In this document: positions 46,516-55,250 of the stretch, piece by piece
Layout: each line of letters opens with the position of its first letter
Numbering within the stretch: the first letter of the stretch is position 1
Sequence record: ON529855.1
Length of the DNA stretch: 64,000 bases
Direction: 5' to 3' (one strand)
Program-made: the position numbers and the translations under genes
Notes under the pieces: model-generated
Database searches by the model: none
Told to the model about the DNA's origin: nothing
Seen by the model: the letters and a program-made list of their open reading frames with translations, nothing else

Positions 46516-46596
46516 TGGCGGGGACGGAGGGAATCGAACCCCCTGGATGACGCCTTCGGAGGGCGTTGCCTACATTCCGGTCGGCACTTCGCCCCC
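46516..46596 (-). tRNA. tRNA-Arg(CCG), atypical D arm
   Basis: GGGGGCG/CGTCCCC acceptor, ACGCC-CTCCGAA-GGCGT anticodon arm, TTCGATT loop, CCA encoded. Confidence 0.85.
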
Positions 46597-46629
46597 GAGG
46601 CGGTGGGCCGGACAGGCCGGCAGAAAGAG

Positions 46630-46711
46630 TGGCGCCCAAGGCAGGATTTGAACCTGCGTTTGCAACTCCGCTACGGATAAGGCCTTCGTAGGACCCCTCG
46701 GTTACTTGGGC
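46630..46711 (-). tRNA. atypical tRNA, probably Arg(ACG): no D arm, double-hairpin variable region
   Basis: Perfect GCCCAAG/CTTGGGC acceptor, canonical T arm, GGGTC-CTACGAA-GGCCT anticodon arm, CCA. Confidence 0.55.
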
Positions 46712-46714
46712 ATT

Positions 46715-46798
46715 TGGCTCCTATGAGAGGACTCGAACCTCTAAGTCTTGCGACGGTCGATTAACAGTCGACTGCGTTTACCATTCCGCCACATAGGA
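46715..46798 (-). tRNA. tRNA-Asn(GTT) with long variable arm
   Basis: GTCGA-CTGTTAA-TCGAC; variable hairpin GTC-GCAA-GAC; CCA. Confidence 0.9.
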
Positions 46799-46823
46799 AC
46801 AAACTGAATACTGATATTTTACC

Positions 46824-46897
46824 TGGTTCTGGCTCTAGGAATCGAACCTAAATCTCGGAGACCAAAACTCCGCGTGATACCGTTACACTAAGCCAGA
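46824..46897 (-). tRNA. tRNA-Gln(TTG)
   Basis: CGGAG-TTTTGGT-CTCCG; TCTGGCT/AGCCAGA acceptor; CCA. Confidence 0.9.
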
Positions 46898-46908
46898 TCA
46901 GGAAAACT

Positions 46909-46986
46909 TGGTAGGAGGTACTGGATTCGAACCAGTGAAATGTCGGTATGTGAAACCGATGCCTTGGGCCGCTTGGCGAACCTCCC
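46909..46986 (-). tRNA. tRNA-Val(CAC)
   Basis: TCGGT-TTCACAT-ACCGA; A73; CCA. Confidence 0.9.
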
Positions 46987-47030
46987 ATGCAAGAGCAGCG
47001 AATCTCCACTGCTCAGGGACAAAGTAAAGT

Positions 47031-47107
47031 TGGTCCTAGCACCAGGATTTGAACCTGGGACCGAGCGGTTATCGACCGCGCGCTCTACCAAACTGAGCTA
47101 TGCTAGG
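47031..47107 (-). tRNA. tRNA-Ile(GAT), C at position 33
   Basis: GCGG-TCGATAA-CCGC; canonical D and T arms; CCA. Confidence 0.9.
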
Positions 47108-47111
47108 GCTG

Positions 47112-47186
47112 TGGTAGCGGATACAGGAATCGCACCTGTGCATGTCGGCGTGTCATACCGATGCCTTTCTACTTGGCTAATCCGCC
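47112..47186 (-). tRNA. tRNA-Val(GAC)
   Basis: TCGGT-ATGACAC-GCCGA; T loop TGCGATT; CCA. Confidence 0.85.
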
Positions 47187-47199
47187 ACACAGAAAAGTG

Positions 47200-47274
47200 T
47201 GGCCCACCCAGGAGCGCTCGCATCTCCGTCTCGGGGATTTCACTCCCGCGCTAATCTGTCTCAGCTATGAGTGG
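47200..47274 (-). tRNA. tRNA-Phe(GAA), divergent
   Basis: CGGGA-GTGAAAT-CCCCG; CCACTCA/TGGGTGG acceptor; T loop TGCGAGC; CCA. Confidence 0.7.
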
Positions 47275-47275
47275 A

Positions 47276-47359
47276 TGGTGGGAAGGGAGAGAATTCGCAC
47301 TCTCACAGCTTGCGCGGGGGATTTACAGTCCCCTGGGCTCACTCGTGCCCAGCCTGCCC
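47276..47359 (-). tRNA. tRNA-Tyr(GTA)
   Basis: GGGGA-CTGTAAA-TCCCC; long variable arm; CCA. Confidence 0.9.
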
Positions 47360-47372
47360 AAAATGTTACGGC

Positions 47373-47390
47373 TCAGTCGCCGCCGGTCAT
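47373..47390 (-). CDS. mini-ORF MTGGD
   Basis: AGGAG SD 6 nt before ATG ACC GGC GGC GAC TGA, between the terminator and tRNA-Tyr. Confidence 0.35.
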   Translation of the reverse strand: MTGGD

Positions 47391-47419
47391 GGTGATCTCC
47401 TGGATCAGATGAAGGTGTT

Positions 47420-47460
47420 GAAACGGAAAAGGCCCGCCTGGCGGAAACCAGGCGGGCCTT
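47420..47460 (-). terminator. attenuator terminator in front of tRNA array A
   Basis: AAGGCCCGCCTGG-TTTCCG-CCAGGCGGGCCTT followed by TTCCGTTTC. Confidence 0.9.
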
Positions 47461-47491
47461 CGAAACTTGGGAGTTCTAAGTGGGTATCAGA

Positions 47492-47587
47492 TTAAATCTG
47501 CGTCCCACCATCGCCCATGCACGAATGGCCCGCCCGGTTAAACCGGACGACCTGAATCTGCTGCACGTTGTTGCGATAGGTGAACAT
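47492..47587 (-). CDS. attenuator leader peptide A (MFTYRNNVQQIQVVRFNRAGHSCMGDGGTQI), probably leaderless
   Basis: ATG lies 7 nt after the -10 box; codons 2-18 match the downstream tRNA identities. Confidence 0.8.
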   Translation of the reverse strand: MFTYRNNVQQIQVVRFNRAGHSCMGDGGTQI

Positions 47588-47594
47588 GAGAAGA

Positions 47595-47623
47595 CGTTTA
47601 CTACAGGCGACGACCAGTGTCAA
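47595..47623 (-). promoter_or_regulatory. promoter of leader A / tRNA array A
   Basis: TTGACA (47623-47618)-N17-TAAACG (47600-47595). Confidence 0.75.
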
Positions 47624-47625
47624 CA

Positions 47626-47841
47626 TTATTGTCGTCTATGGACCCAAGTTTTTTCGAGGGCGCTGTCCCAGGTCCCCCAGTTGCAGGGATCAGGGTAGTC
47701 CCGATAGCGCCAGCCGCCGCAGTAACGGCACATGGCTTCGGTCTGGTCAGCCTCAGCGGGATGCGGCTCGCAGTCCCCCGAGACGTCGCACAAAGGCCAC
47801 CCGTCCGGCCCCAGGGTGGGGTCGTCGTCCGGGTCCGTCAC
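47626..47841 (-). CDS. hypothetical Cys-containing protein (71 aa)
   Basis: GTG overlapping the upstream TGA; CxxC (CRYC). Confidence 0.5.
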   Translation of the reverse strand: MTDPDDDPTLGPDGWPLCDVSGDCEPHPAEADQTEAMCRYCGGWRYRDYPDPCNWGTWDSALEKTWVHRRQ

Positions 47842-48134
47842 AGGGTGTAATCGACGGTCGGGTCGGGAAGCCAGACCTCTTCCAGCAGACGTTCCTGCCA
47901 CTGGGCCTCGTGGTCCCAGGACAGGATCACGCCGGACCGCGTTTCGCTGCCGTCGATCAGCGTCGCGCAGCCGTAGACGTCAAAGGGCGGCGCGCCATCA
48001 TAGGAATGGTGGCGCAAGGTATAGAGATGGGGACCGTTGCCGCCGCACCAGCGCACCAGGACTTTCGCCCCGTCAGGCAGGGCGCGGATTTCGGCCGGGG
48101 TCAGCCTCGGGGTATCGGGGACGGCGTGGGTCAT
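47838..48134 (-). CDS. hypothetical protein (98 aa)
   Basis: Translationally coupled (TGATG) in a small-gene operon. Confidence 0.65.
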   Translation of the reverse strand: MTHAVPDTPRLTPAEIRALPDGAKVLVRWCGGNGPHLYTLRHHSYDGAPPFDVYGCATLIDGSETRSGVILSWDHEAQWQERLLEEVWLPDPTVDYTL

Positions 48135-48397
48135 CAGGCGGGGTTCGGCGGCGTATACGGCATGGGGCGCAGACGGGGCTCGGCGCGCGGATGACTGATT
48201 CCGGTCGGCATGATGTTCAATTGCAGCCCGGCGCCCCGACGCAGCAGCATCATGAGATCATGGGCGCGCACCGCCTCGGCCGGCGCGGCGAATGTCAGTT
48301 CGATCAGCACGCGATTGCTGTCGGTGCTGCACGCGGTCGCGATCTGGTCAGGCTCCAGGTCCAGAGCCTGCGTGGGACTGATGTTGAGCCGGCTCAT
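48134..48397 (-). CDS. hypothetical protein (87 aa)
   Basis: ATGA overlap with the def stop. Confidence 0.6.
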   Translation of the reverse strand: MSRLNISPTQALDLEPDQIATACSTDSNRVLIELTFAAPAEAVRAHDLMMLLRRGAGLQLNIMPTGISHPRAEPRLRPMPYTPPNPA

Positions 48398-48936
48398 GCG
48401 CGTGTCATCCGACGCACGTTGTCCTGGTGCTTCTTCAGCAGCATCGCCCGCTTCAGCGACGAGACCCGGTCGATGTTGCGCACCCCGTCCAGGTGGTCCA
48501 TCTCGTGCTGAAGACAGATGGCCTTGTAACCCTTGCCCGACACGGTCTGCATACGGCCGTGAATGTCCTGGTATTCGACCGTCACTTCCCGATGCCGGCG
48601 CACGCGGAAAAAGACGCCCGGCATGGACAGGCATCCCTCCGGCATCTCGATCATGTCCTCGGACTTGTCGATGAACGTGGGGTTGATCAGGATCAGTTTG
48701 GGGCGATCGACCATGACGTCTTGCACCGGAAGTCCGGTGTCGGGCAGGTCGATCATGGTGAAGATGCGCAAGGGCACGCCGACCTGAACGGCGGCGAGCC
48801 CCGCGCCCTCGGCCATCAACATGGTGTCGACCATGTCGAAGCAAAGCGCCCGCACCTCGTCGGTGATCTCGAAGACCGTATCGGAGGGCTTCGTCATCAG
48901 GGCGTCGGTGCAGGGGATGATCTGGCGTAGCGCCAT
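48394..48936 (-). CDS. def: peptide deformylase
   Basis: GAGLAAVQVG, EGCLSMPG, QHEMDHLDG. Confidence 0.95.
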   Translation of the reverse strand: MALRQIIPCTDALMTKPSDTVFEITDEVRALCFDMVDTMLMAEGAGLAAVQVGVPLRIFTMIDLPDTGLPVQDVMVDRPKLILINPTFIDKSEDMIEMPEGCLSMPGVFFRVRRHREVTVEYQDIHGRMQTVSGKGYKAICLQHEMDHLDGVRNIDRVSSLKRAMLLKKHQDNVRRMTRA

Positions 48937-49157
48937 TATGCGGGGGTCTCCGAAGGACGCCCGGCGCGCCACAACTCCACAGAATTCTGTCCCGCCTGGA
49001 GAACCTCACTGAGGTCCTCCAGGTGGTCCATCTGCTGTTTCAGCGCCATGCGGGCGTCTTCCAGCCCGATGTCCTGAAGCTTGACGACGCGCCCGCCCAC
49101 CATGACCTGGTAGTCCTGATAGGGCGGCCAATCATCGGGGGGCGTGACGGCCGTCAT
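48936..49157 (-). CDS. hypothetical protein (73 aa)
   Basis: Coupled to neighbours by TGATG and TAATG overlaps. Confidence 0.65.
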   Translation of the reverse strand: MTAVTPPDDWPPYQDYQVMVGGRVVKLQDIGLEDARMALKQQMDHLEDLSEVLQAGQNSVELWRAGRPSETPA

Positions 49158-49453
49158 CAGATTTCTCCGAGCGCGCTCAGGTACAGGTCCAGGATGGCGT
49201 CTTCTTCCTGGCGCTTGGCCTTGTCCTGCTTGCGCAGGCGCAGCACCTTGCGCAGAATCTTCACGTCGTATCCCTCGCCCTTGGCTTCGGCGAAGACTTC
49301 CTTCATGTCGACCATGACGGCCTGCTTGTCCTCTTCGAGGCGCTCCAGCCGCTCGATGATCGAGCGCAGGCGGCCCTGGGCGGAGGCGGTCAGGGCGTCG
49401 TCGGCCGACATGGCGTTGGCGGGCTCGACGCCGGTGATGGTGGTCTCGGTCAT
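49157..49453 (-). CDS. gapR: GapR-like nucleoid-associated protein (DUF2312)
   Basis: AQGRLRSIIERLERLEEDK...KEVFAEAKGEGYDVKILRKVLRLRKQDKAKRQEEDAILDLYLSALGEI, closely matching Caulobacterales GapR as I recall it. Confidence 0.95.
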   Translation of the reverse strand: MTETTITGVEPANAMSADDALTASAQGRLRSIIERLERLEEDKQAVMVDMKEVFAEAKGEGYDVKILRKVLRLRKQDKAKRQEEDAILDLYLSALGEI

Positions 49454-49481
49454 AGGTCTCTCGGGGGGGGTTGGTCGCCGG

Positions 49482-49727
49482 TTATCCGGTGACGAGGTAG
49501 CGAAGGATCGCGAGAAGTTCGCGGTCCGCATCAGGCTGTTGGGCCTTCTGGTCGATGAGGCGCAGGGCGGCGTTCTTGCGCGCCCGCTGTTTGGCGGCGT
49601 GAACGCCGAGAGTCTGCGCCAAGTCGCGCATCTCTGTCTCGTCCACATAGGCGCCGAGCGCATCCCCATACCGTCGGTTGGCGGGGTAGGTGGCGTAGTC
49701 CGGGGCCAGCGGCGGGAGGCCGTCCAT
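49482..49727 (-). CDS. hypothetical protein (81 aa)
   Basis: GGAG SD; coupled to the upstream ORF. Confidence 0.6.
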   Translation of the reverse strand: MDGLPPLAPDYATYPANRRYGDALGAYVDETEMRDLAQTLGVHAAKQRARKNAALRLIDQKAQQPDADRELLAILRYLVTG

Positions 49728-49903
49728 CACATGTCTCCACAAGGATCGTGCAGGGTGTCGCCCTGGTCGAGGTCCTCGACGAAGCGGCCGTTCAGGAAGC
49801 GCCCCGTGGTGGTCTGGCCGTTGAGCCGACGCACGACCCGCAACTGATGGTCCAGCCAGTAGTAGGGCACGCCCCACGCCTCGCGATAGACCGGCTCGGT
49901 CAC
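49727..49903 (-). CDS. hypothetical protein (58 aa, not in ORF track)
   Basis: GTG overlapping the DUF4170 TGA; MTEPVYREAWGVPYYWLDH... Confidence 0.5.
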   Translation of the reverse strand: MTEPVYREAWGVPYYWLDHQLRVVRRLNGQTTTGRFLNGRFVEDLDQGDTLHDPCGDM

Positions 49904-50160
49904 GAGTAGGTCGCGCCCGAAGCCCGGACCACCAGGTCGGCGACGGGTTTGCCATGAGCGACGATCATTTCGTCGTAGGTGTTGATGTGGAAGCGCATCA
50001 GGGCGTTGTCGACCGTCTGCCAGGCATAGGCCTTCCAGGCGTCTCGGGCGTCTTCGCGGCGGGAGAAGGACCCCACGAAGATGATTTTGCGCGGATCGCG
50101 GAAGGCTTCCTCGCGGGGGTGGGGATGCTCGCCCCCATAGACGTAATAGGTGTCAGGCAT
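49900..50160 (-). CDS. DUF4170-family protein
   Basis: YVYGGE...F.DP..I..VGSF....A..AW...AWQTVDNALMRFHI. Confidence 0.75.
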   Translation of the reverse strand: MPDTYYVYGGEHPHPREEAFRDPRKIIFVGSFSRREDARDAWKAYAWQTVDNALMRFHINTYDEMIVAHGKPVADLVVRASGATYS

Positions 50161-50162
50161 GC

Positions 50163-51050
50163 TTACAAAGTCACGATCAGGCGGGGATTGAAGTTCGGGT
50201 TCAGTTCATGCCCGACATAGCCGCGAGGATTGCAGATCACGCGGGTCTCGCCGATCTGGTAGTCGCTGCTGTCATGCATGTGACCATGGACCCACAAGGC
50301 GGGCTCCCACTCCAACATCAGCGGCTCCAGCCGCGACGCATAGGCGGGGTTCAGCGGCGATCCCCGATAACGAGGATGGCTCGACTGCTCCGACGGCGCA
50401 TGGTGGGAGATCACCACGGTCGGGCCGTCATGAGGAACCCGCAGCGTTTCCGTCAGGAAGAAGCGGCTTTCCAGATGAAGGCGCCGCGTGTCGTCCGCCG
50501 TCAGGCGCTGCTGCTGCTTCAATTCGATCTGCCGATAGTCGTTCATGTCCGACTGGGCGTGCCGGATCGACAAGGGCCAGGTCCCATAGAGGTCGAAATC
50601 GGTCCACAGGGTGGCGCCGAGGAAACGCACGTCGCCCACATGGACCTGCTCGTTATCCATGACGAAGACGCGGGCGGGCGCCAGTTCGTCAGCCTTGGCC
50701 TTCATCTTCTCGATGTGGCGGTGGTAGCGCCGCTTGCCGTAGAACTCGTGATTGCCCGGAACATAGAGGCAGGGGACGTCAGGGAAATGCCGCGCCAGCC
50801 AGATCACGCCGACGACGCCCGTCGCCAGGTCGCCGGCGGCGATGACCACGTCGATCTCGTCAGCCGTGGGCGCCGTCCAGGTGCGACGGTCCATTCCGCC
50901 GAACTCCAGATGGAGGTCCGACAGGATCAGGGCGCGCAACGGCCGTCGTCCAGGAGTCCGCCGCGCCAGGCCGGCTTCGATGTCAGCCTGCATGTCGGCC
51001 GCAGCCGCCACAGTGAACTCCATCTCAGCCTTGCTCCACTTGGTCTCCAT
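50163..51050 (-). CDS. calcineurin-like metallophosphoesterase
   Basis: SDLHLE, AAGDL, VPGNHEFY, VISHHAP, WVHGHMH, VICNPRGY. Confidence 0.95.
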   Translation of the reverse strand: METKWSKAEMEFTVAAAADMQADIEAGLARRTPGRRPLRALILSDLHLEFGGMDRRTWTAPTADEIDVVIAAGDLATGVVGVIWLARHFPDVPCLYVPGNHEFYGKRRYHRHIEKMKAKADELAPARVFVMDNEQVHVGDVRFLGATLWTDFDLYGTWPLSIRHAQSDMNDYRQIELKQQQRLTADDTRRLHLESRFFLTETLRVPHDGPTVVISHHAPSEQSSHPRYRGSPLNPAYASRLEPLMLEWEPALWVHGHMHDSSDYQIGETRVICNPRGYVGHELNPNFNPRLIVTL

Positions 51051-51070
51051 CGTGGAGCATCCTTGAAATC

Positions 51071-51189
51071 TGGAGCGGGTGGACAGACTCGAACTGCCGC
51101 CTCCGGGTTAGCCACCCGGCGCTCCTGGGTCCACGCGAACCCCCGACGATGATTCGCGTGATCATCGTCGGCCCTAGAGCCTCACCCGC
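51071..51189 (-). ncRNA. 119-nt tRNA-like RNA with two hairpins inserted in the D loop
   Basis: GCGGGTG/CACCCGC acceptor, U73, CCA; GCTC/GAGC D stem enclosing 52 nt; CCGGG-TGGCTAA-CCCGG; GGCAG-TTCGAGT-CTGTC. Confidence 0.8.
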
Positions 51190-51426
51190 ATAAGTTGGCA
51201 GGAGTTTTCAGATATGGCGAACCATACCCAGGGCGACCCTCCTGCCAGGAACCCCCGTCTCGGTTTCTTTCACTGGCCCCGACACGAGCACCTGTCAAAG
51301 CCTATCTAGCCGCCAGGCTTGCGGAACGTCTCGGGCGATTAGGCGCCTCGGGATGAACAGCGTTGCGGACGGCGTAGCATCGGCTTGCCGTGATTACTGA
51401 CAGACGGCGCCGGTGGTGTCAACAAT

Positions 51427-51460
51427 GAAAAACGCCCCGACCTTTCGATCGGGGCGTTCT
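51427..51460 (-). terminator. intrinsic terminator
   Basis: AACGCCCCGATC-GAAA-GGTCGGGGCGTT followed by TTT. Confidence 0.85.
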
Positions 51461-51772
51461 TCAGAGGTTCGCCATCCACTGCTTACGGCAGCGGGTGTGA
51501 TCCTTCCAGGACTTGCCGCCGGGGCGCGACGCCATGAGGTCGTCGTAGGACGAGGGAAGGACCATGCGTCGGCCACGGGCGCGGTAGAGGCGATCGTGGG
51601 CTTCGCCGATGTTGCGCCGCCGCTCCTGCATGGTGCGGGGGCAGCGGTGCATGTAGCGCCAGCGGTGGCGGAAGCGCCGGCAGCGGTAGGGCTCGCCGGG
51701 CTCCAGGTAGAGGACGCGCCAGCCCACGAAGTAGAAGCCGGAGTGGGTGACGCGCTCGAATTGGGGCTTCAT
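51461..51772 (-). CDS. basic hypothetical protein (103 aa), LPxxYDD...SWK...RKQW type
   Basis: AGGAGG SD; very Arg-rich; at the end of tRNA array B. Confidence 0.8.
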   Translation of the reverse strand: MKPQFERVTHSGFYFVGWRVLYLEPGEPYRCRRFRHRWRYMHRCPRTMQERRRNIGEAHDRLYRARGRRMVLPSSYDDLMASRPGGKSWKDHTRCRKQWMANL

Positions 51773-51872
51773 GTCAGCCTCCTGCTAGGTTGAGTACCTA
51801 GCGGGTGCTGTATTCCAGGTAGAACTTGATCATGGGATCATCCTAGCCCAAGCGGGGCTGTTCGTCTAGGAA

Positions 51873-51961
51873 TGGCGGATGGGGCAGGGATCGAACCCGC
51901 GTAACCCTCTCGGGTGTCGACCGCTTAGCAAGCGGCTGCCTTACCTCTCGGCCACCCATCC
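51873..51961 (-). tRNA. tRNA-Ser(GCT)
   Basis: GCCGC-TTGCTAA-GCGGT; long variable arm; G73; CCA. Confidence 0.95.
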
Positions 51962-51968
51962 GGGGTGT

Positions 51969-52053
51969 TGGCGGTGCGCCAGGGAATCGAACCCTCAACC
52001 TTGCGGTCGGCGACGGTTTTCAAGACCGCTTGTCCCCATGGACGCTGCGCACC
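51969..52053 (-). tRNA. tRNA-Ser(TGA)
   Basis: GCGGT-CTTGAAA-ACCGT; D arm GTCC-ATGG-GGAC; long variable arm; CCA. Confidence 0.9.
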
Positions 52054-52058
52054 GAAGG

Positions 52059-52149
52059 TGGCGGACGGCACGCGATTCGAACGCGTGGGACCCAGGGGGT
52101 CCGCCTGCCTTCCAAGCAGGTGCCTTAAGCCGGGCTCAGCCAGCCGTCC
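52059..52149 (-). tRNA. tRNA-Ser(GGA)
   Basis: CCTGC-TTGGAAG-GCAGG; long variable arm; CCA. Confidence 0.95.
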
Positions 52150-52154
52150 GGTGT

Positions 52155-52372
52155 TGGTGGAGGCGAGGGGATTCGAACCCCCGTAGACGCCGAACCCTCG
52201 CATTACCAAGGGCCGATCTCAGGTTTAGAACGCGTGTGCCGCCCTGACCATCTTCCGCAGGCCAGGGGGTCTATCGTAACGACCCCGTCGATCGGTTGCC
52301 TCTGCGTCCCGGATTTACCCGGACCGTTGCTCTGTTCCACGGTGCTCATGCCGAAACCCGAGCGACGCCCCC
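52155..52372 (-). ncRNA. 218-nt tRNA-like RNA with Ala-type acceptor (G3.U70, A73, CCA)
   Basis: 5' GGGGGCG pairs with 3' CGCCTCC-ACCA; T arm GGGGG-TTCGAAT-CCCCT; about 140 extra nt in several hairpins; flanked by short spacers like its tRNA neighbours. Confidence 0.75.
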
Positions 52373-52381
52373 GTGAAGAAA

Positions 52382-52469
52382 TGGAGGATGGTGTGGGATT
52401 CGAACCCACGGAACCTTGCGGTCCACCGGTTTTCGAAACCGGCGCGATCGGCCTCTCCGCCAACCATCC
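52382..52469 (-). tRNA. tRNA-Ser(CGA)
   Basis: CCGGT-TTCGAAA-ACCGG; long variable arm; U73; CCA. Confidence 0.95.
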
Positions 52470-52476
52470 AGAACAG

Positions 52477-52665
52477 TCAGGCCGAGGCCGGACTGTAGTT
52501 GTCGATGTCGTCGACCCGGATCGCCGTGCCCGCCGCAATCTGGCGGTCGGCGCTCAACAGTTCGGCGACCAGGTCGTCGGCCGTGACGGCGGCGCCGGAG
52601 GTGGCGAACTTCACGTTCACCAGGCGGCCGTCAGCGAACATCTCGTCGATCGCGGCGCGATCCAT
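52477..52665 (-). CDS. hypothetical protein (62 aa) embedded in the tRNA array
   Basis: GAAAGG SD; MDRAAIDEMFADGRLVNVKF... Confidence 0.6.
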   Translation of the reverse strand: MDRAAIDEMFADGRLVNVKFATSGAAVTADDLVAELLSADRQIAAGTAIRVDDIDNYSPASA

Positions 52666-52698
52666 GATAGACCTTTCTGCCGGCCTCGCCGGCGGTGA

Positions 52699-52769
52699 TG
52701 GTGGAGACAGTGGGGCTCGAACCCACCAAGGCTTCCTTGCAAAGGATGCCTGCGCCCTGCGCTGTCCCC
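52699..52769 (-). tRNA. tRNA-Ala(TGC), shortened D arm
   Basis: GGGGACA/TGTCTCC with G3.U70; loop TTTGCAA; A73; CCA. Confidence 0.85.
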
Positions 52770-52806
52770 GTAGGGGTTGAGTGTCAGCCATGCCGACAAT
52801 AAGTGT

Positions 52807-52882
52807 TGGTCCTGGCACTCAGATTCGAACTGAGCCATCGTGCTCCACAAACACGCGCCTCCACCGCAGAGGCTTTACCAGG
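52807..52882 (-). tRNA. tRNA-His(GTG), no G-1, A73
   Basis: CGTGT-TTGTGGA-GCACG; only a 2-nt spacer (AC) after the preceding CCA. Confidence 0.9.
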
Positions 52883-52884
52883 GT

Positions 52885-52972
52885 TGGTCGCGACGACAGG
52901 GGTCGAACCTGCCCGGCCTTTCGGCCACTACCACCTCAAGGTAGCGCGTCTACCAGACTCCGCCACGTCGCG
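52885..52972 (-). tRNA. tRNA-Leu(GAG)
   Basis: CTACC-TTGAGGT-GGTAG; long variable arm; CCA. Confidence 0.95.
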
Positions 52973-52981
52973 ATCGAAAGT

Positions 52982-53067
52982 TGGTGCCCGTCCCCGGACT
53001 CGAACCGGGACGCCACGAGGGCCACGCCTTTTGAGGGCGCTGCGTCTACCTTTCCGTCCAGACGGGC
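52982..53067 (-). tRNA. tRNA-Leu(CAA)
   Basis: GCGCC-CTCAAAA-GGCGT; long variable arm; CCA. Confidence 0.95.
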
Positions 53068-53077
53068 AGTTGAAAAA

Positions 53078-53164
53078 TGGTGCGGGCGAGAGGATTCGAA
53101 CCTCCCCGGCACAAAGGCCACGAGTACCTGAGACTCGCGCGGCTACCAACTTCGCCACGCCCGC
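53078..53164 (-). tRNA. tRNA-Leu(CAG)
   Basis: CGAGT-CTCAGGT-ACTCG; long variable arm; CCA. Confidence 0.95.
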
Positions 53165-53169
53165 ATTTT

Positions 53170-53251
53170 TGGAGAACCCTGGTGGAGTCGAACCACTTGC
53201 GCCTGGATTAAAAGCCCAATCCCGGCCACCCGGATTTAACGCTCAAGGTCC
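53170..53251 (-). tRNA. tRNA-Lys(TTT), atypical D region
   Basis: TTGGG-CTTTTAA-TCCAG; GGACCTT/AGGGTTC acceptor; CCA. Confidence 0.75.
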
Positions 53252-53264
53252 CCTAAAGTTATGT

Positions 53265-53355
53265 TGGTGAACGTGGTCGGACTCGCACCGACGATGAAGG
53301 TTGTAACCTAACGGGATTAAGAGCCCCGGCCTCTCGCTACTGAGGTGACACGTCC
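53265..53355 (-). tRNA. tRNA-Lys(CTT) with long variable arm
   Basis: CGGGG-CTCTTAA-TCCCG; variable hairpin AGGT-TACA-ACCT; T loop TGCGAGT; CCA. Confidence 0.85.
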
Positions 53356-53390
53356 AAAACTGTTGTTCTTCTCTCCTGAAGACTTGAAAA

Positions 53391-53461
53391 TGGAGCCGGC
53401 GGACGGTGTCGAACCGTCCCATGTCCACTACGAAAGGTCAGCCCTGCCACCAGGCGCCGGC
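53391..53461 (-). tRNA. tRNA-Thr(CGT), degenerate anticodon stem, mini D arm
   Basis: Perfect GCCGGCG/CGCCGGC acceptor (G1-C72, C2-G71); GACCT-TTCGTAG-TGGAC; next to Thr(GGT); CCA. Confidence 0.6.
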
Positions 53462-53467
53462 GTTGTT

Positions 53468-53538
53468 TGGTGCCAAGGGAGGGAGTCAAACCCTCGCTGA
53501 ACCCATACCAAGGGCTCGACCGATCACCCGGCCTTGGC
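53468..53538 (-). tRNA. tRNA-Thr(GGT), short D arm
   Basis: AGCCC-TTGGTAT-GGGTT; GCCAAGG/CCTTGGC acceptor; CCA. Confidence 0.8.
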
Positions 53539-53546
53539 GTTGATGT

Positions 53547-53621
53547 TGGTCGGAACACCAGGATTCGAACCTGGGACCCCTAGCTTCCCGAGCCAGTGCG
53601 CTACCGCTGCGCTACATTCCG
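53547..53621 (-). tRNA. tRNA-Pro(GGG), C at position 33
   Basis: CTGGC-TCGGGAA-GCTAG; C1-G72; CCA. Confidence 0.9.
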
Positions 53622-53630
53622 AGTTGATGA

Positions 53631-53707
53631 TGGTCGGCGAGGGAGGATTCGAACCTCCGATCCCTCCGACCCGAACGGAGTGACTTACCAGACTTGCCCA
53701 CACGCCG
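53631..53707 (-). tRNA. tRNA-Pro(CGG)
   Basis: CTCCG-TTCGGGT-CGGAG; C1-G72; CCA. Confidence 0.9.
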
Positions 53708-53710
53708 ATG

Positions 53711-53749
53711 GAAACGAAAAAGGCCCCGGAGGCTTTGCGCCTGGGGCCT
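53711..53749 (-). terminator. attenuator terminator in front of tRNA array B
   Basis: AGGCCCC...GGGGCCT stem followed by TTTTCGTTTC, ending 3 nt before tRNA-Pro. Confidence 0.85.
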
Positions 53750-53821
53750 GAAACATCTGCTGTTTTGGGGTTCAGCAGGTGATCGGCCCCTTAGGGCGCC
53801 TCACCTGCTTGGTGCCTGTTG

Positions 53822-53953
53822 TTACAGGAAACCTTCCAGGGAGACGCCACCGGTGGTGGGGGACTTCGTCGACAGTTTCGGCGCATGCGCGAGCGTCGAC
53901 AGCGCCGTGGCGGCGGTCGAAAGCGGGCTCAGCTTGTGCGACAAGGTGGTCAC
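53822..53953 (-). CDS. attenuator leader peptide B (MTTLSHKLSPLSTAATALSTLAHAPKLSTKSPTTGGVSLEGFL)
   Basis: GTG start with weak GGA SD; codons 2-34 use only T/L/S/H/K/P/A, the identities of array B. Confidence 0.8.
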   Translation of the reverse strand: MTTLSHKLSPLSTAATALSTLAHAPKLSTKSPTTGGVSLEGFL

Positions 53954-54005
53954 GATGAAGGTCCAGTCCGAAGAAGGAGCGCAAATGCGCTGTGATGAAG
54001 TCTGA

Positions 54006-54034
54006 TCTCTACAGGAAGCTTGAGCGTATGTCAA
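54006..54034 (-). promoter_or_regulatory. promoter of leader B / tRNA array B
   Basis: TTGACA (54034-54029)-N17-TAGAGA (54011-54006). Confidence 0.7.
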
Positions 54035-54755: not shown

Positions 54756-54830
54756 TGGCGAGTCCAAGGGGAGTTGAACCCCTCTCTCCACCGTGACAGG
54801 GTGGTGTCCTAACCGATAGACGATGGACCC
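54756..54830 (-). tRNA. tRNA-Asp(GTC)
   Basis: CCACC-CTGTCAC-GGTGG; G73; CCA. Confidence 0.95.
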
Positions 54831-54861
54831 GTATCAGAGGGTCGATCCGCAGGAAGATGCT

Positions 54862-54939
54862 TGGAAGGGCGCCGGAGACTCGAACTCCGCTCACTTGGTT
54901 GAAAGCCAAGTATCCTGCAAACCGCTAGACGAGCGCCCC
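54862..54939 (-). tRNA. tRNA-Glu(TTC)
   Basis: CTTGG-CTTTCAA-CCAAG; CCA. Confidence 0.9.
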
Positions 54940-54973
54940 ATAAAGCACAGGGCGTCGAACACGAGAGCCGCGA

Positions 54974-55039
54974 TTAGGCGGCGGTCGTATCTCGGCCCTG
55001 GAAGGCCTCTCGTTCGTAGCTGGTCAGACGGTAGGTCAT
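54974..55039 (-). CDS. putative leaderless 21-aa peptide (MTYRLTSYEREAFQGRDTTAA)
   Basis: ATG 6 nt after TTGACA-N17-TACAAG (55074-55046); precedes tRNA-Glu/Asp. Confidence 0.4.
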   Translation of the reverse strand: MTYRLTSYEREAFQGRDTTAA

Positions 55040-55070
55040 TTGTCGCTTGTATCAGAACTGTCGGTGGGTG

Positions 55071-55250
55071 TCAAGAAGGACGGCGAATCTTTTTGGACCT
55101 TGCATGGGGTCGGTCTTCCTCGGCCTCAGGCTCGGCCGCGTCCCAGGCCATCCACAGGGCCGCGAGAAAAGCAGGCGGACCCATCAAGTCTTCCAACCGC
55201 TTCAAGGCCCGGTCGTTGGCCGCCAGGAAGGCGTCGCCGTATTCAAGCAT
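55071..55250 (-). CDS. hypothetical protein (59 aa, not in ORF track)
   Basis: GAGGT SD; MLEYGDAFLAANDRALKRLEDLM... Confidence 0.55.
   Translation of the reverse strand: MLEYGDAFLAANDRALKRLEDLMGPPAFLAALWMAWDAAEPEAEEDRPHARSKKIRRPS

Follow-up and report, generated by a model that had tools for sequence, protein, structure and literature searches.

We analyzed a 64-kb stretch of the jumbo phage Brevundimonas phage vB_BpoS-Domovoi (ON529855.1, 352 kb; hereafter Domovoi), which we call the window. It contains two large arrays of transfer RNA (tRNA) genes, A and B, and each array is preceded by the same elements in the same order: a TTGACA promoter-like site, a short open reading frame (ORF) that we refer to as the leader, and an intrinsic terminator (Table 1). 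Every tRNA gene in the window and both leaders are on the minus strand. An earlier note, made from the letters of the DNA, had proposed that the leaders are attenuators that switch on the tRNA operons when decoding of the matching codons fails. Here we describe a computational analysis of that proposal.

Table 1. Features of the tRNA region of Domovoi (positions in the window).
Feature	Position	Strand	Description	Source
Array A promoter-like site	47595..47623	-	-35 TTGACA (47623-47618), 17-nt spacer, -10-like TAAACG (47600-47595)	
Leader ORF A	47492..47587	-	MFTYRNNVQQIQVVRFNRAGHSCMGDGGTQI and stop; ATG start, 31 codons + TAA	
Sensing run of leader A	47534..47578	-	codons 4-18, YRNNVQQIQVVRFNR	
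Region 1	47542..47549	-	forms 1:2 hairpin with region 2	
Region 2	47527..47537	-	pairs with region 1, or with the terminator 5' arm (region 3) as antiterminator	
Stop-codon hairpin A	47488..47500	-	CAGAU-UUA-AUCUG; in both the terminated and the antiterminated predicted fold	
Intrinsic terminator A	47420..47458	-	region 3 (47458-47448), region 4 (47441-47431), U-tract (47430-47420)	
tRNA array A	46516..47359	-	Tyr-GTA, Phe-GAA, Val-GAC, Ile-GAT, Val-CAC, Gln-TTG, Asn-GTT, Arg, Arg-CCG	ARAGORN, Rfam
Array B promoter-like site	54006..54034	-	-35 TTGACA (54034-54029), 17-nt spacer, -10-like TAGAGA (54011-54006)	
Leader ORF B	53822..53953	-	(M)TTLSHKLSPLSTAATALSTLAHAPKLSTKSPTTGGVSLEGFL and stop; GTG start, 43 codons + TAA	
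Sensing run of leader B	53852..53950	-	codons 2-34, all Pro/Thr/Lys/Leu/His/Ala/Ser	
Attenuator B switch	53710..53851	-	S1 53851-53836 (codons 35-40), stop-codon hairpin 53828-53815, S2 53807-53795	
Attenuator B switch, 3' part		-	S3 53790-53773, S4 53762-53739 (holds the terminator 5' arm), S5 53733-53722, U-tract 53721-53710	
tRNA array B, first part	51873..53707 (whole array)	-	Pro-CGG, Pro-GGG, Thr-GGT (by eye), Thr-CGT, Lys-CTT, Lys-TTT, Leu-CAG, Leu-CAA, Leu-GAG, His-GTG, Ala-TGC	
tRNA array B, remainder		-	60-codon ORF, Ser-CGA, 132-nt tRNA-like stretch, Ser-GGA, Ser-TGA, Ser-GCT	
Candidate third attenuator	54756..55074	-	TTGACA 55074-55069; near-leaderless ORF MTYRLTSYEREAFQGRDTTAA and stop, 55039-54974; hairpin 55000-54948	
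tRNA-Glu, tRNA-Asp	54939-54862, 54830-54756	-	downstream of the hairpin of the third leader	

With default settings, ARAGORN identified 21 tRNAs in the window and Rfam added 3 weak ones. At a relaxed threshold, ARAGORN added Tyr-GTA, Phe-GAA, two Arg, Thr-CGT, and two Lys. The relaxed-threshold sets confirmed that the amino acids are partitioned between the two arrays without overlap: array A serves Tyr, Phe, Val, Ile, Gln, Asn, and Arg, and array B serves Pro, Thr, Lys, Leu, His, Ala, and Ser.

We found that each leader is built from the amino acids of its own array. Our recount of the sensing regions agreed exactly with the earlier numbers: 16 of 17 codons in leader A (15 of them uninterrupted) and 33 of 33 in leader B are in the set of the array downstream. 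Across the six frames of the 64 kb, the runners-up for these two sets are 13 and 22 codons long, compared to the 15 and 33 of the leaders (binomial probabilities 2.4e-7 for A and 1.6e-13 for B). As had also been claimed, each leader matches its own array and hardly the other. Seventeen codons of leader A can be read by tRNAs of array A, 4 by those of array B, and 1 by those of a separate tRNA-Glu/tRNA-Asp array; for leader B the corresponding numbers are 2, 29, and 1, and 36 of its 42 residues are in its own set. Both are short ORFs enriched in codons that report on the regulated function, as the leaders of attenuators are.

The order of leader, terminator, and tRNAs is kept in front of the homologous arrays of the phages Gurke, Kikimora, Bambus, Kabachok, Bajun, phiCbK, Rogue, BL10, Colossus, PW, CcrSC, and BL9, and the start, frame, length, and stop position of the leader are conserved in nine phages. 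Domovoi was isolated on strain EIF1, and Kabachok and Bambus on Brevundimonas pondensis LVF1; phiCbK and Caulobacter crescentus are a phage and host in common laboratory use. The B leaders have diverged strongly in sequence and have kept their composition. We compared the alternative residues in aligned sensing regions to those expected from random non-synonymous single-base changes. In the B leaders, 25 of 26 alternative residues were within the set, compared to 47% expected (P ~1e-7), and in the A leaders 13 of 16 were within the set, compared to 23% expected (P ~1e-6). Radical exchanges (Asn/Phe, Gln/Arg, Val/Arg) were tolerated in the leaders and stayed within the set. The three out-of-set cases in the A leaders include Leu and Trp at one position inside region 2, a part of the RNA switch described below. 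The signal of in-set substitution was limited to the proposed reading frame, and because of this we infer that ribosomes read the leader ORFs. It appears that membership in the set, and not the structure of the peptide, is under selection.

The conserved ORFs could instead encode peptides with a function of their own, with a composition unrelated to tRNAs and with terminators that are leaky insulators. Leader A is fairly well conserved as a peptide, and the B leader is annotated as a hypothetical protein in phiCbK, Rogue, BL10, Bajun, and CcrSC (in phiCbK as coding sequence gp335, with terminators at the same places as in Domovoi). However, the conservation of leader A is largely explained by RNA helices, the B leaders diverge freely and keep nothing but composition, chemically radical substitutions do not leave the set, and the composition of the leaders in two distant phages (below) changes with the content of the operon. 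In addition, searches of Pfam and PHROGs with three leader peptides returned no matching family. We consider a separate peptide function to be very improbable, and what has been annotated as "hypothetical proteins" ahead of the tRNA arrays of these phages probably represents leader peptides.

A tRNA-Trp is present in array B in only two members of the phiCbK group, CcrSC and BL9, and within this group only these two have Trp in the B leader. This co-occurrence is suggestive and no stronger than that, since it represents a single evolutionary event. We had considered Rogue and BL10 as a counter-example (Ser codons in the leader without Ser tRNAs) and dropped it: ARAGORN at a relaxed threshold finds atypical Ser tRNAs in both.

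The content of the leaders co-varies with the content of the operons in more distant phages, in which the tRNAs are grouped differently. We found two such phages, the Sphingobium phage Lacusarx and the Erythrobacter phage vB_EliS-L02 (hereafter L02), by the similarity of their tRNAs and not by a DNA pattern. In Lacusarx, a near-leaderless ORF with RFGKRDRREGERGF (14 of 14 codons in the set) precedes Lys, Lys, Gly, Asp, Glu, Glu, Gly, Arg, and Phe, and a leaderless ORF, MF-TQTTLLTQCHYWQLLSSSSL followed by a stop (20 of 20; 0.317^20 = 1e-10), precedes Ser, Tyr, Leu, Leu, Thr, His, Gln, Ser, Cys, and Trp. In L02, an ORF beginning MF-NVIAMNNPAPAIMVPVAMA (19 of 19) precedes Pro, Pro, Met, Val, Ile, Ala, and Asn; MTFGRTKRDRREGDERGFTS and a stop precede a Lys/Gly/Asp/Glu/Arg/Phe operon; and MFTQTALHLLTQTTLCWQCQYSSLSPF and a stop precede a Ser/Tyr/Leu/Thr/His/Gln/Cys/Trp operon. 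Val, Ile, and Asn are thus grouped with Pro, Ala, and Met in L02 and with Tyr, Phe, Gln, and Arg in Domovoi, and the leaders track each grouping. Co-variation of this kind had been suggested as a check on the proposal, and the leaders of Lacusarx and L02 provide it.

We also scanned blindly for ORFs that end <=220 nt upstream of a tRNA and scored them by the length of the run in the downstream set. The leaders rank first in Domovoi, Lacusarx, L02, CcrSC, Colossus, and phiCbK. In the roseophage DSS3P8, used as a negative control, the best run was 9 residues and there was no credible matched leader. One could still suppose that the leaders are chance ORFs upstream of constitutive terminators, with no regulation, given that GC-rich genomes carry many spurious ORFs and that the -10 elements (see below) are weak. 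The run-length statistics, the conservation of start, frame, length, and stop position, the frame-specific pattern of substitution, and the recurrence in two further lineages but not in the control make this scarcely credible.

When IMG/VR and JGI metagenomes were scanned with DNA patterns of the A-type core, the only matches were cultured Caulobacter and Brevundimonas phages and chance terminators, which indicates that the A-type sequence family is narrow. In the L02 record (OL955261.1), no tRNA is annotated between 66000 and 82000, where ARAGORN finds ~35. A Leu-rich hydrophobic ORF of 37 residues, with a Shine-Dalgarno site, lies before the tRNA-Leu(TAA) of L02; it has no TTA or TTG codon and so is not a matched leader.

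The promoter-like sites are only partly as they had been described. The earlier note had placed a sigma70 promoter in front of both arrays. The -35 hexamer is perfect in both, but the -10 hexamers are weak as judged by the Escherichia coli consensus, and for this reason neither site was called in a consensus promoter scan. A TTGAC -35 element is found upstream of the B leader in all relatives, and the pattern TTGACA-N17-TAnnnn-N7-ATG recurs in most A-type leaders (in Colossus and PW without the TA) and also in Lacusarx and in leader 3 of L02. The ATG of leader A is 7 nt after the -10-like TAAACG, implying that this leader would be translated from a leaderless mRNA. Leader B would have a 5' untranslated region of ~50 nt after its -10-like element. 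Translation of leaderless mRNAs in Caulobacter is efficient and no poorer than that of leadered ones (PMC4117421). Many leaders begin with Met-Phe (ATG TTC), including the A leader of Domovoi, the B leaders of phiCbK, Rogue, and BL10, leader 7 of Lacusarx, and leaders 1 and 3 of L02, a shared start that may be relevant to initiation on leaderless mRNAs. Outside the sensing runs, the tails of the leaders are filled by Gly, Trp, Met, and Cys.

The fixed distance of 7 nt between the -10 element and the start codon, together with the in-frame, set-restricted substitutions, points to ribosomes as the sensors. This bears on the notion that the leader RNA senses uncharged tRNA directly, without translation, in the manner of a T-box; T-box leaders also couple tRNA charging to a choice between antiterminator and terminator. 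However, one T-box reads one specifier codon and not 15-33, and no T-box or other cis-regulatory Rfam family was found between 45500 and 57500, even at E <= 1. We regard direct sensing as extremely improbable.

The RNA downstream of the sensing codons of leader A has the elements of a classical switch: an intrinsic terminator before the first gene, and a conserved antiterminator that shares a strand with it. The terminator (GGCCCGCCUGG..CCAGGCGGGCC and then a U-tract) has a strong, GC-rich stem of 11 bp, the inner part of which was also found by a terminator scan. We tested the helices on an alignment of nine phage leaders, using as controls the same helices with the partner slid by 1-3 columns. 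Helix 1:2, inside the ORF (codons 13-19), was 89% paired, helix 2:3 (the antiterminator) 98%, and helix 3:4 (the terminator) 100%. Each of the three had 3 pairs changed on both sides, and the slid controls were 22-60% paired. One column changes jointly in regions 2, 3, and 4, from G to A, in CcrSC and Bajun. In Colossus, a change in region 2 from CGG to UUG matches a change in the terminator arm from CCUGG to CCAGG; the out-of-set Leu codon (UUG) of this A leader is explained by its fit to the altered arm. The Trp codon (UGG) in the A leader of PW leaves two mismatches in helix 2:3. We rejected an additional helix, P0 (codons 7-9 with 22-24). It was 90% paired one column off the first register and 86% and 79% in other registers, and is uninformative because the alternating sequence pairs in many registers.

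We then folded the RNA with a 28-nt ribosome footprint masked, an equilibrium model that was applied to both leaders. For leader A, the probability of the terminator was 0.98 in free RNA, 0.93-0.99 with the A site of the ribosome at codons 1-8, and 0.75 at codon 9. It was ~0 at codons 10-13, rose from codon 14, and was 0.97 at the stop codon. Gurke, phiCbK, and Rogue behaved like Domovoi, and the permissive window of Bajun was at codons 4-14. According to this model, a ribosome paused with its A site at about codons 10-13 (Gln, Ile, Gln, Val) would cover region 1, leaving region 2 to pair with the 5' arm of the terminator. Without a ribosome, or with one that had moved past codon 15, helix 1:2 would form and then the terminator. 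Leader A thus has the features of a trp-type three-helix switch, predicted to work on a leaderless mRNA.

Leader B is predicted to switch differently. Its terminator (GGCCCCAGGC..GCCUCCGGGGCC and then a U-tract) has a strong, GC-rich stem of 6+4 bp, and the RNA from the end of the sensing run to the terminator contains five segments, S1 to S5. The predicted read-through fold has helices S1:S2 and S3:S4, and the predicted termination fold has S2:S3 and S4:S5. The probability of the terminator was 0.004 in free RNA, stayed <= ~0.1 (mostly <0.02) for ribosome positions from codon 1 to codon 34, and then rose to 0.86-0.99 for codons 35-44. Codon 35, at which the prediction switches, is precisely the first codon after the run of 33. 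The same step is predicted for Gurke, Kikimora, and Rogue, and in part for Bambus and phiCbK. By inspection, phiCbK has the same logic with unrelated sequences (S1 GGCCUCGCACUCG with S2 CGGGUGCAGGCC, S3 GGAGCCGC with S4 GCGGCUCC), and the switch also recurs with unrelated segments in Rogue.

In the model for leader B, pairing of S1 with S2 would leave S3 free to sequester S4, which holds the 5' arm of the terminator, and transcription would read through. A ribosome that crosses all 33 codons in time would cover S1, S2 would move onto S3, and the terminator S4:S5 would form. The outcome would be a race, and the order of synthesis favors the same outcome during transcription. Each of the 33 codons would add delay, because only arrival at S1 matters, and this would explain a sensor of 33 codons with a freely drifting sequence. 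Leader B therefore looks like a cascade of five segments, with read-through in free RNA and termination only when a ribosome has passed the run. For loss of the start codon, the model predicts constitutive termination in A and constitutive read-through in B.

It follows that the two leaders, which had been described as wired alike, share the order of promoter, ORF, terminator, and tRNAs but not the switch: A is trp-like and its free RNA is predicted to terminate, and B looks like a cascade whose free RNA is predicted to read through. The related claim that the stop codon of each leader is at the apex of a hairpin incompatible with termination agrees with the predicted folds of B, where the hairpin caps helix S1:S2, but not with those of A, where the hairpin is present in both folds. 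Judged by eye, most relatives keep the stop-codon hairpin of A with a different sequence.

A third leader may lie in front of tRNA-Glu and tRNA-Asp in the window. Its hairpin is long and compound, with the 3' end of the ORF as the 5' arm and the stop codon at the apex. Only 3 of its 20 codons are matched. At least one Glu codon (two in 8 of 9), an Asp codon, and the compound hairpin are kept in nine phages. This leader is a probable attenuator, on grounds of conservation and not of statistics.

Based on these results we infer, with a probability of roughly three in four, that leaders A and B are ribosome-dependent transcription attenuators and that slow decoding of the codons in their sets leads to read-through into the tRNA operon. 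The short ORF would serve as a track on which translation is tested, composed of codons for the amino acids of the downstream tRNAs, and would set how much RNA polymerase from a constitutive promoter reads through into the operon. When there is too little charged tRNA, of the host or of the phage, the ribosome would remain upstream of the switch, the terminator would not form, and the operon would be transcribed. When decoding is fast, the terminator would form. The outcome would be negative feedback on the supply of tRNA, with one loop per operon.

Several observations weigh against this interpretation, in addition to the weak -10 hexamers. In Domovoi, only ~5 of the 15 set-A codons are effective in the equilibrium model, and with a ribosome stalled at codons 4-9 the terminator is still predicted to form; for the Tyr, Arg, and Asn codons of leader A, a role would depend on composition alone or on a kinetic argument. 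Masked-footprint folding gave clean switches in Domovoi and several relatives and not in all. The balance of A varies: PW never switches, read-through is the default up to codon 15 in CcrSC and BL9, and Colossus is intermediate, so the balance between helices 1:2 and 2:3 is evidently fine. The B switch was not reproduced in Bajun, Colossus, or CcrSC with the terminator definitions used. Covariation in B is thin and comes from five Brevundimonas-phage sequences: the helices of the read-through fold were 85% paired with 3 double changes and those of the termination fold 93% with 1, compared to 30-56% for slid controls, and the predicted antiterminator S3:S4 was 89% paired, weaker evidence than for helix 2:3 of A. 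For leader 5 of Lacusarx and leader 1 of L02, the folding model gave no convincing antiterminator.

The match between leaders and tRNAs also has a limit. All 15 ARAGORN-called tRNAs of array B in Domovoi have a cognate codon in leader B, and the coverage of ARAGORN-called tRNAs by the B leader is complete in 8 of 9 phages (14 of 15 tRNAs in Bajun). Random codons reach this coverage with P ~5e-5 to 7e-3 per phage. However, when the peptide was fixed and synonymous codons were resampled, the observed coverage was reached in 14-77% of trials (14-35% for the B leaders). In addition, GCC (Ala) codons are common in the B leaders and the phage has only tRNA-Ala(UGC), which is non-cognate by standard wobble. 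The leaders had been called codon-matched. Given the resampling, the match is established at the level of amino acids only and tuning at the level of codons is not significant.

We are less certain of the polarity, which comes from the folding model, than of attenuation itself. With the opposite polarity, efficient translation of the leader would promote read-through, through the alternative folds or by a ribosome that trails the polymerase and obstructs the terminator, and the tRNA operons would be on only when the matching amino acids and charged tRNAs are plentiful, a stringent-like brake encoded by the phage and not a sensor of demand. Matching of codons to operons is expected under either polarity, and some leaders fit the opposite one. 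The terminators of Lacusarx leader 5 and L02 leader 2 begin right after the stop codon, the terminator of Lacusarx leader 5 was blocked in simulations only by a ribosome on the last codons, and the 5' arm of the terminator-like hairpin of the Domovoi Glu/Asp leader is inside the ORF. In contrast, the stop codons of A and B are ~34 and ~60 nt before the 5' arm of the terminator, and a terminating ribosome therefore cannot mask it. The antiterminator 2:3 of A is under selection and would be released by a ribosome on region 1, and the model for B gives termination once the ribosome is at the end of the ORF. For these reasons we think that the opposite polarity is unlikely.

If slow decoding causes read-through, then a stalled ribosome would report the total charged tRNA of host and phage, and a feedback loop on what the phage itself supplies is no less likely than a response to failure of host tRNAs. 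A more specific possibility, which we put forward only tentatively, is that each leader is part of a closed loop that gauges decoding of just the codons served by its operon and replaces those tRNAs on demand, a sensor-coupled answer to anticodon nucleases and other tRNA-targeting defenses such as PrrC, VapC, PARIS, or retrons. If so, the operons would be induced whenever the host, or shut-off by the phage itself, destroys or de-charges a subset of tRNAs, and B would be a fail-safe under global arrest of translation, because it reads through when translation stops.

Some of the tRNAs are unusual. Several of those at 47359-47200, 53538-53170, and 46711-46516 are atypical and escape default ARAGORN and, except for Lys-CTT and the two Arg (weak scores), Rfam. 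For example, the T loop of Tyr-GTA has 8 nt (UGCGAAUU) and that of Phe-GAA has 9 nt. The Tyr element of Lacusarx is 81-87% identical to those of the Caulobacter and Brevundimonas phages. The first Arg tRNA of array A has the anticodon ACG by manual reading and CCT according to ARAGORN. In Domovoi, the Thr-GGT candidate (53538-53468) was seen only by eye, and ARAGORN calls it at the same position in relatives. The phiCbK genome paper states that phiCbK-like phages are without Tyr and Thr tRNAs; this absence probably reflects a failure of detection. As a matter of annotation, atypical Tyr, Thr, Phe, Lys, Arg, and Ser tRNAs escape standard tools.

The arrays contain or adjoin other features, all on the minus strand. 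A mini-ORF, ATG ACC GGC GGC GAC TGA (MTGGD and stop; 47390-47373), with a strong GGAG ribosome-binding site, lies between terminator A and tRNA-Tyr. Comparable mini-ORFs (MTGGD, MNNGG) are found in Gurke, Colossus, PW, Rogue, and BL10, and not in phiCbK or Bajun. The 60-codon ORF in array B (MDRAAIDEMFADGRLVNVKF...; 52665-52485) is between tRNA-Ala and tRNA-Ser-CGA, and a hypothetical protein is annotated at the same place in Bambus, Kabachok, Gurke, and Kikimora. The 132-nt stretch at 52286-52155, between Ser-CGA and Ser-GGA, scores 32 bits against the Rfam model for transfer-messenger RNA (tmRNA; gathering score 47), and very relaxed ARAGORN gives an odd tRNA with a 4-base anticodon at 52295-52210. 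An array of Trp, Gly, and Gly tRNAs (55959-55701) is without a leader ORF or terminator. It directly follows a protein-coding gene and so is apparently outside this kind of control. Between arrays A and B is a gene for peptide deformylase (~48700-48400; motifs EGCLS and HEMDH), another translation-related gene of the module, which carries this annotation in Gurke, Colossus, PW, and Bajun.

The usual view of phage tRNA genes is that they are a constitutive cargo for correcting codon usage, and to our knowledge essentially nothing is known of their regulation. The earlier note knew of no description of attenuated phage tRNA operons, and this still holds. We found no description of attenuated tRNA operons in full-text searches of literature mostly outside the subscription journals, so a prior mention is possible. 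The words "attenuat" and "leader" do not occur in the phiCbK genome paper, which does not mention attenuation. If our interpretation is correct, the supply of phage tRNA is actively regulated by decoding performance, through a translated "barcode" of operon content, and classical attenuation reaches beyond enzymes and synthetases to include the tRNAs themselves. In this design, leader B would be a kinetic timer of 33 codons and seven amino acids. Such leaders could also be usable as compact reporters of charged-tRNA pools.

Leader A closely follows the attenuators of trp, his, thr, leu, and pheA, all of which have a short ORF rich in regulatory codons, competing 1:2, 2:3, and 3:4 helices, and a terminator before the structural genes. 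In contrast, attenuators of the trp and his type control enzymes and sense one or two amino acids, and here the targets are tRNAs and the amino acids are seven. Leader A also differs from them in its leaderless mRNA, and leader B in its five segments and its default read-through. The leaders of ilvGMEDA and ilvBN mix Leu, Val, and Ile codons over ~15 codons, and shortage of any of the three relieves termination. They are alike in that one leader serves several amino acids. They differ in that their three amino acids are related, whereas the seven here are unrelated and set by the content of the operon, and the product fed back is the tRNA itself. The attenuators of pheST and other synthetase genes, and T-boxes, are alike in that charged tRNA controls a component of decoding through a choice between terminator and antiterminator. 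They differ in regulating synthetases; T-boxes bind tRNA directly, without a ribosome, and their signature was not matched here.

In the coupling attenuators of pyrBI and pyrE, a ribosome close behind the polymerase can block the terminator. The Glu/Asp leader of Domovoi, in which the ORF overlaps the terminator, and leader 5 of Lacusarx and leader 2 of L02, in which the terminator abuts the stop codon, are like these. Leaders A and B are not, as their stop codons are well upstream of the terminator. Leaderless short poly-Cys ORFs in mycobacteria are reportedly similar in that a leaderless ORF rich in the sensed codon controls a downstream operon, and they differ in that they sense a single amino acid, have metabolic targets, and are bacterial and not of phage (bioRxiv 10.1101/834739).

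Attenuators classically precede genes for biosynthesis or synthetases. Downstream of leaders A and B there are only tRNAs, plus the 60-codon ORF in array B. The proposed mechanism is one of ribosome-mediated attenuation with tRNA genes as the target. What is new in comparison with the known systems is that tRNAs are the controlled genes, that the leader is an inventory of the seven amino acids of its operon, and that B would be a long kinetic timer that reads through by default.

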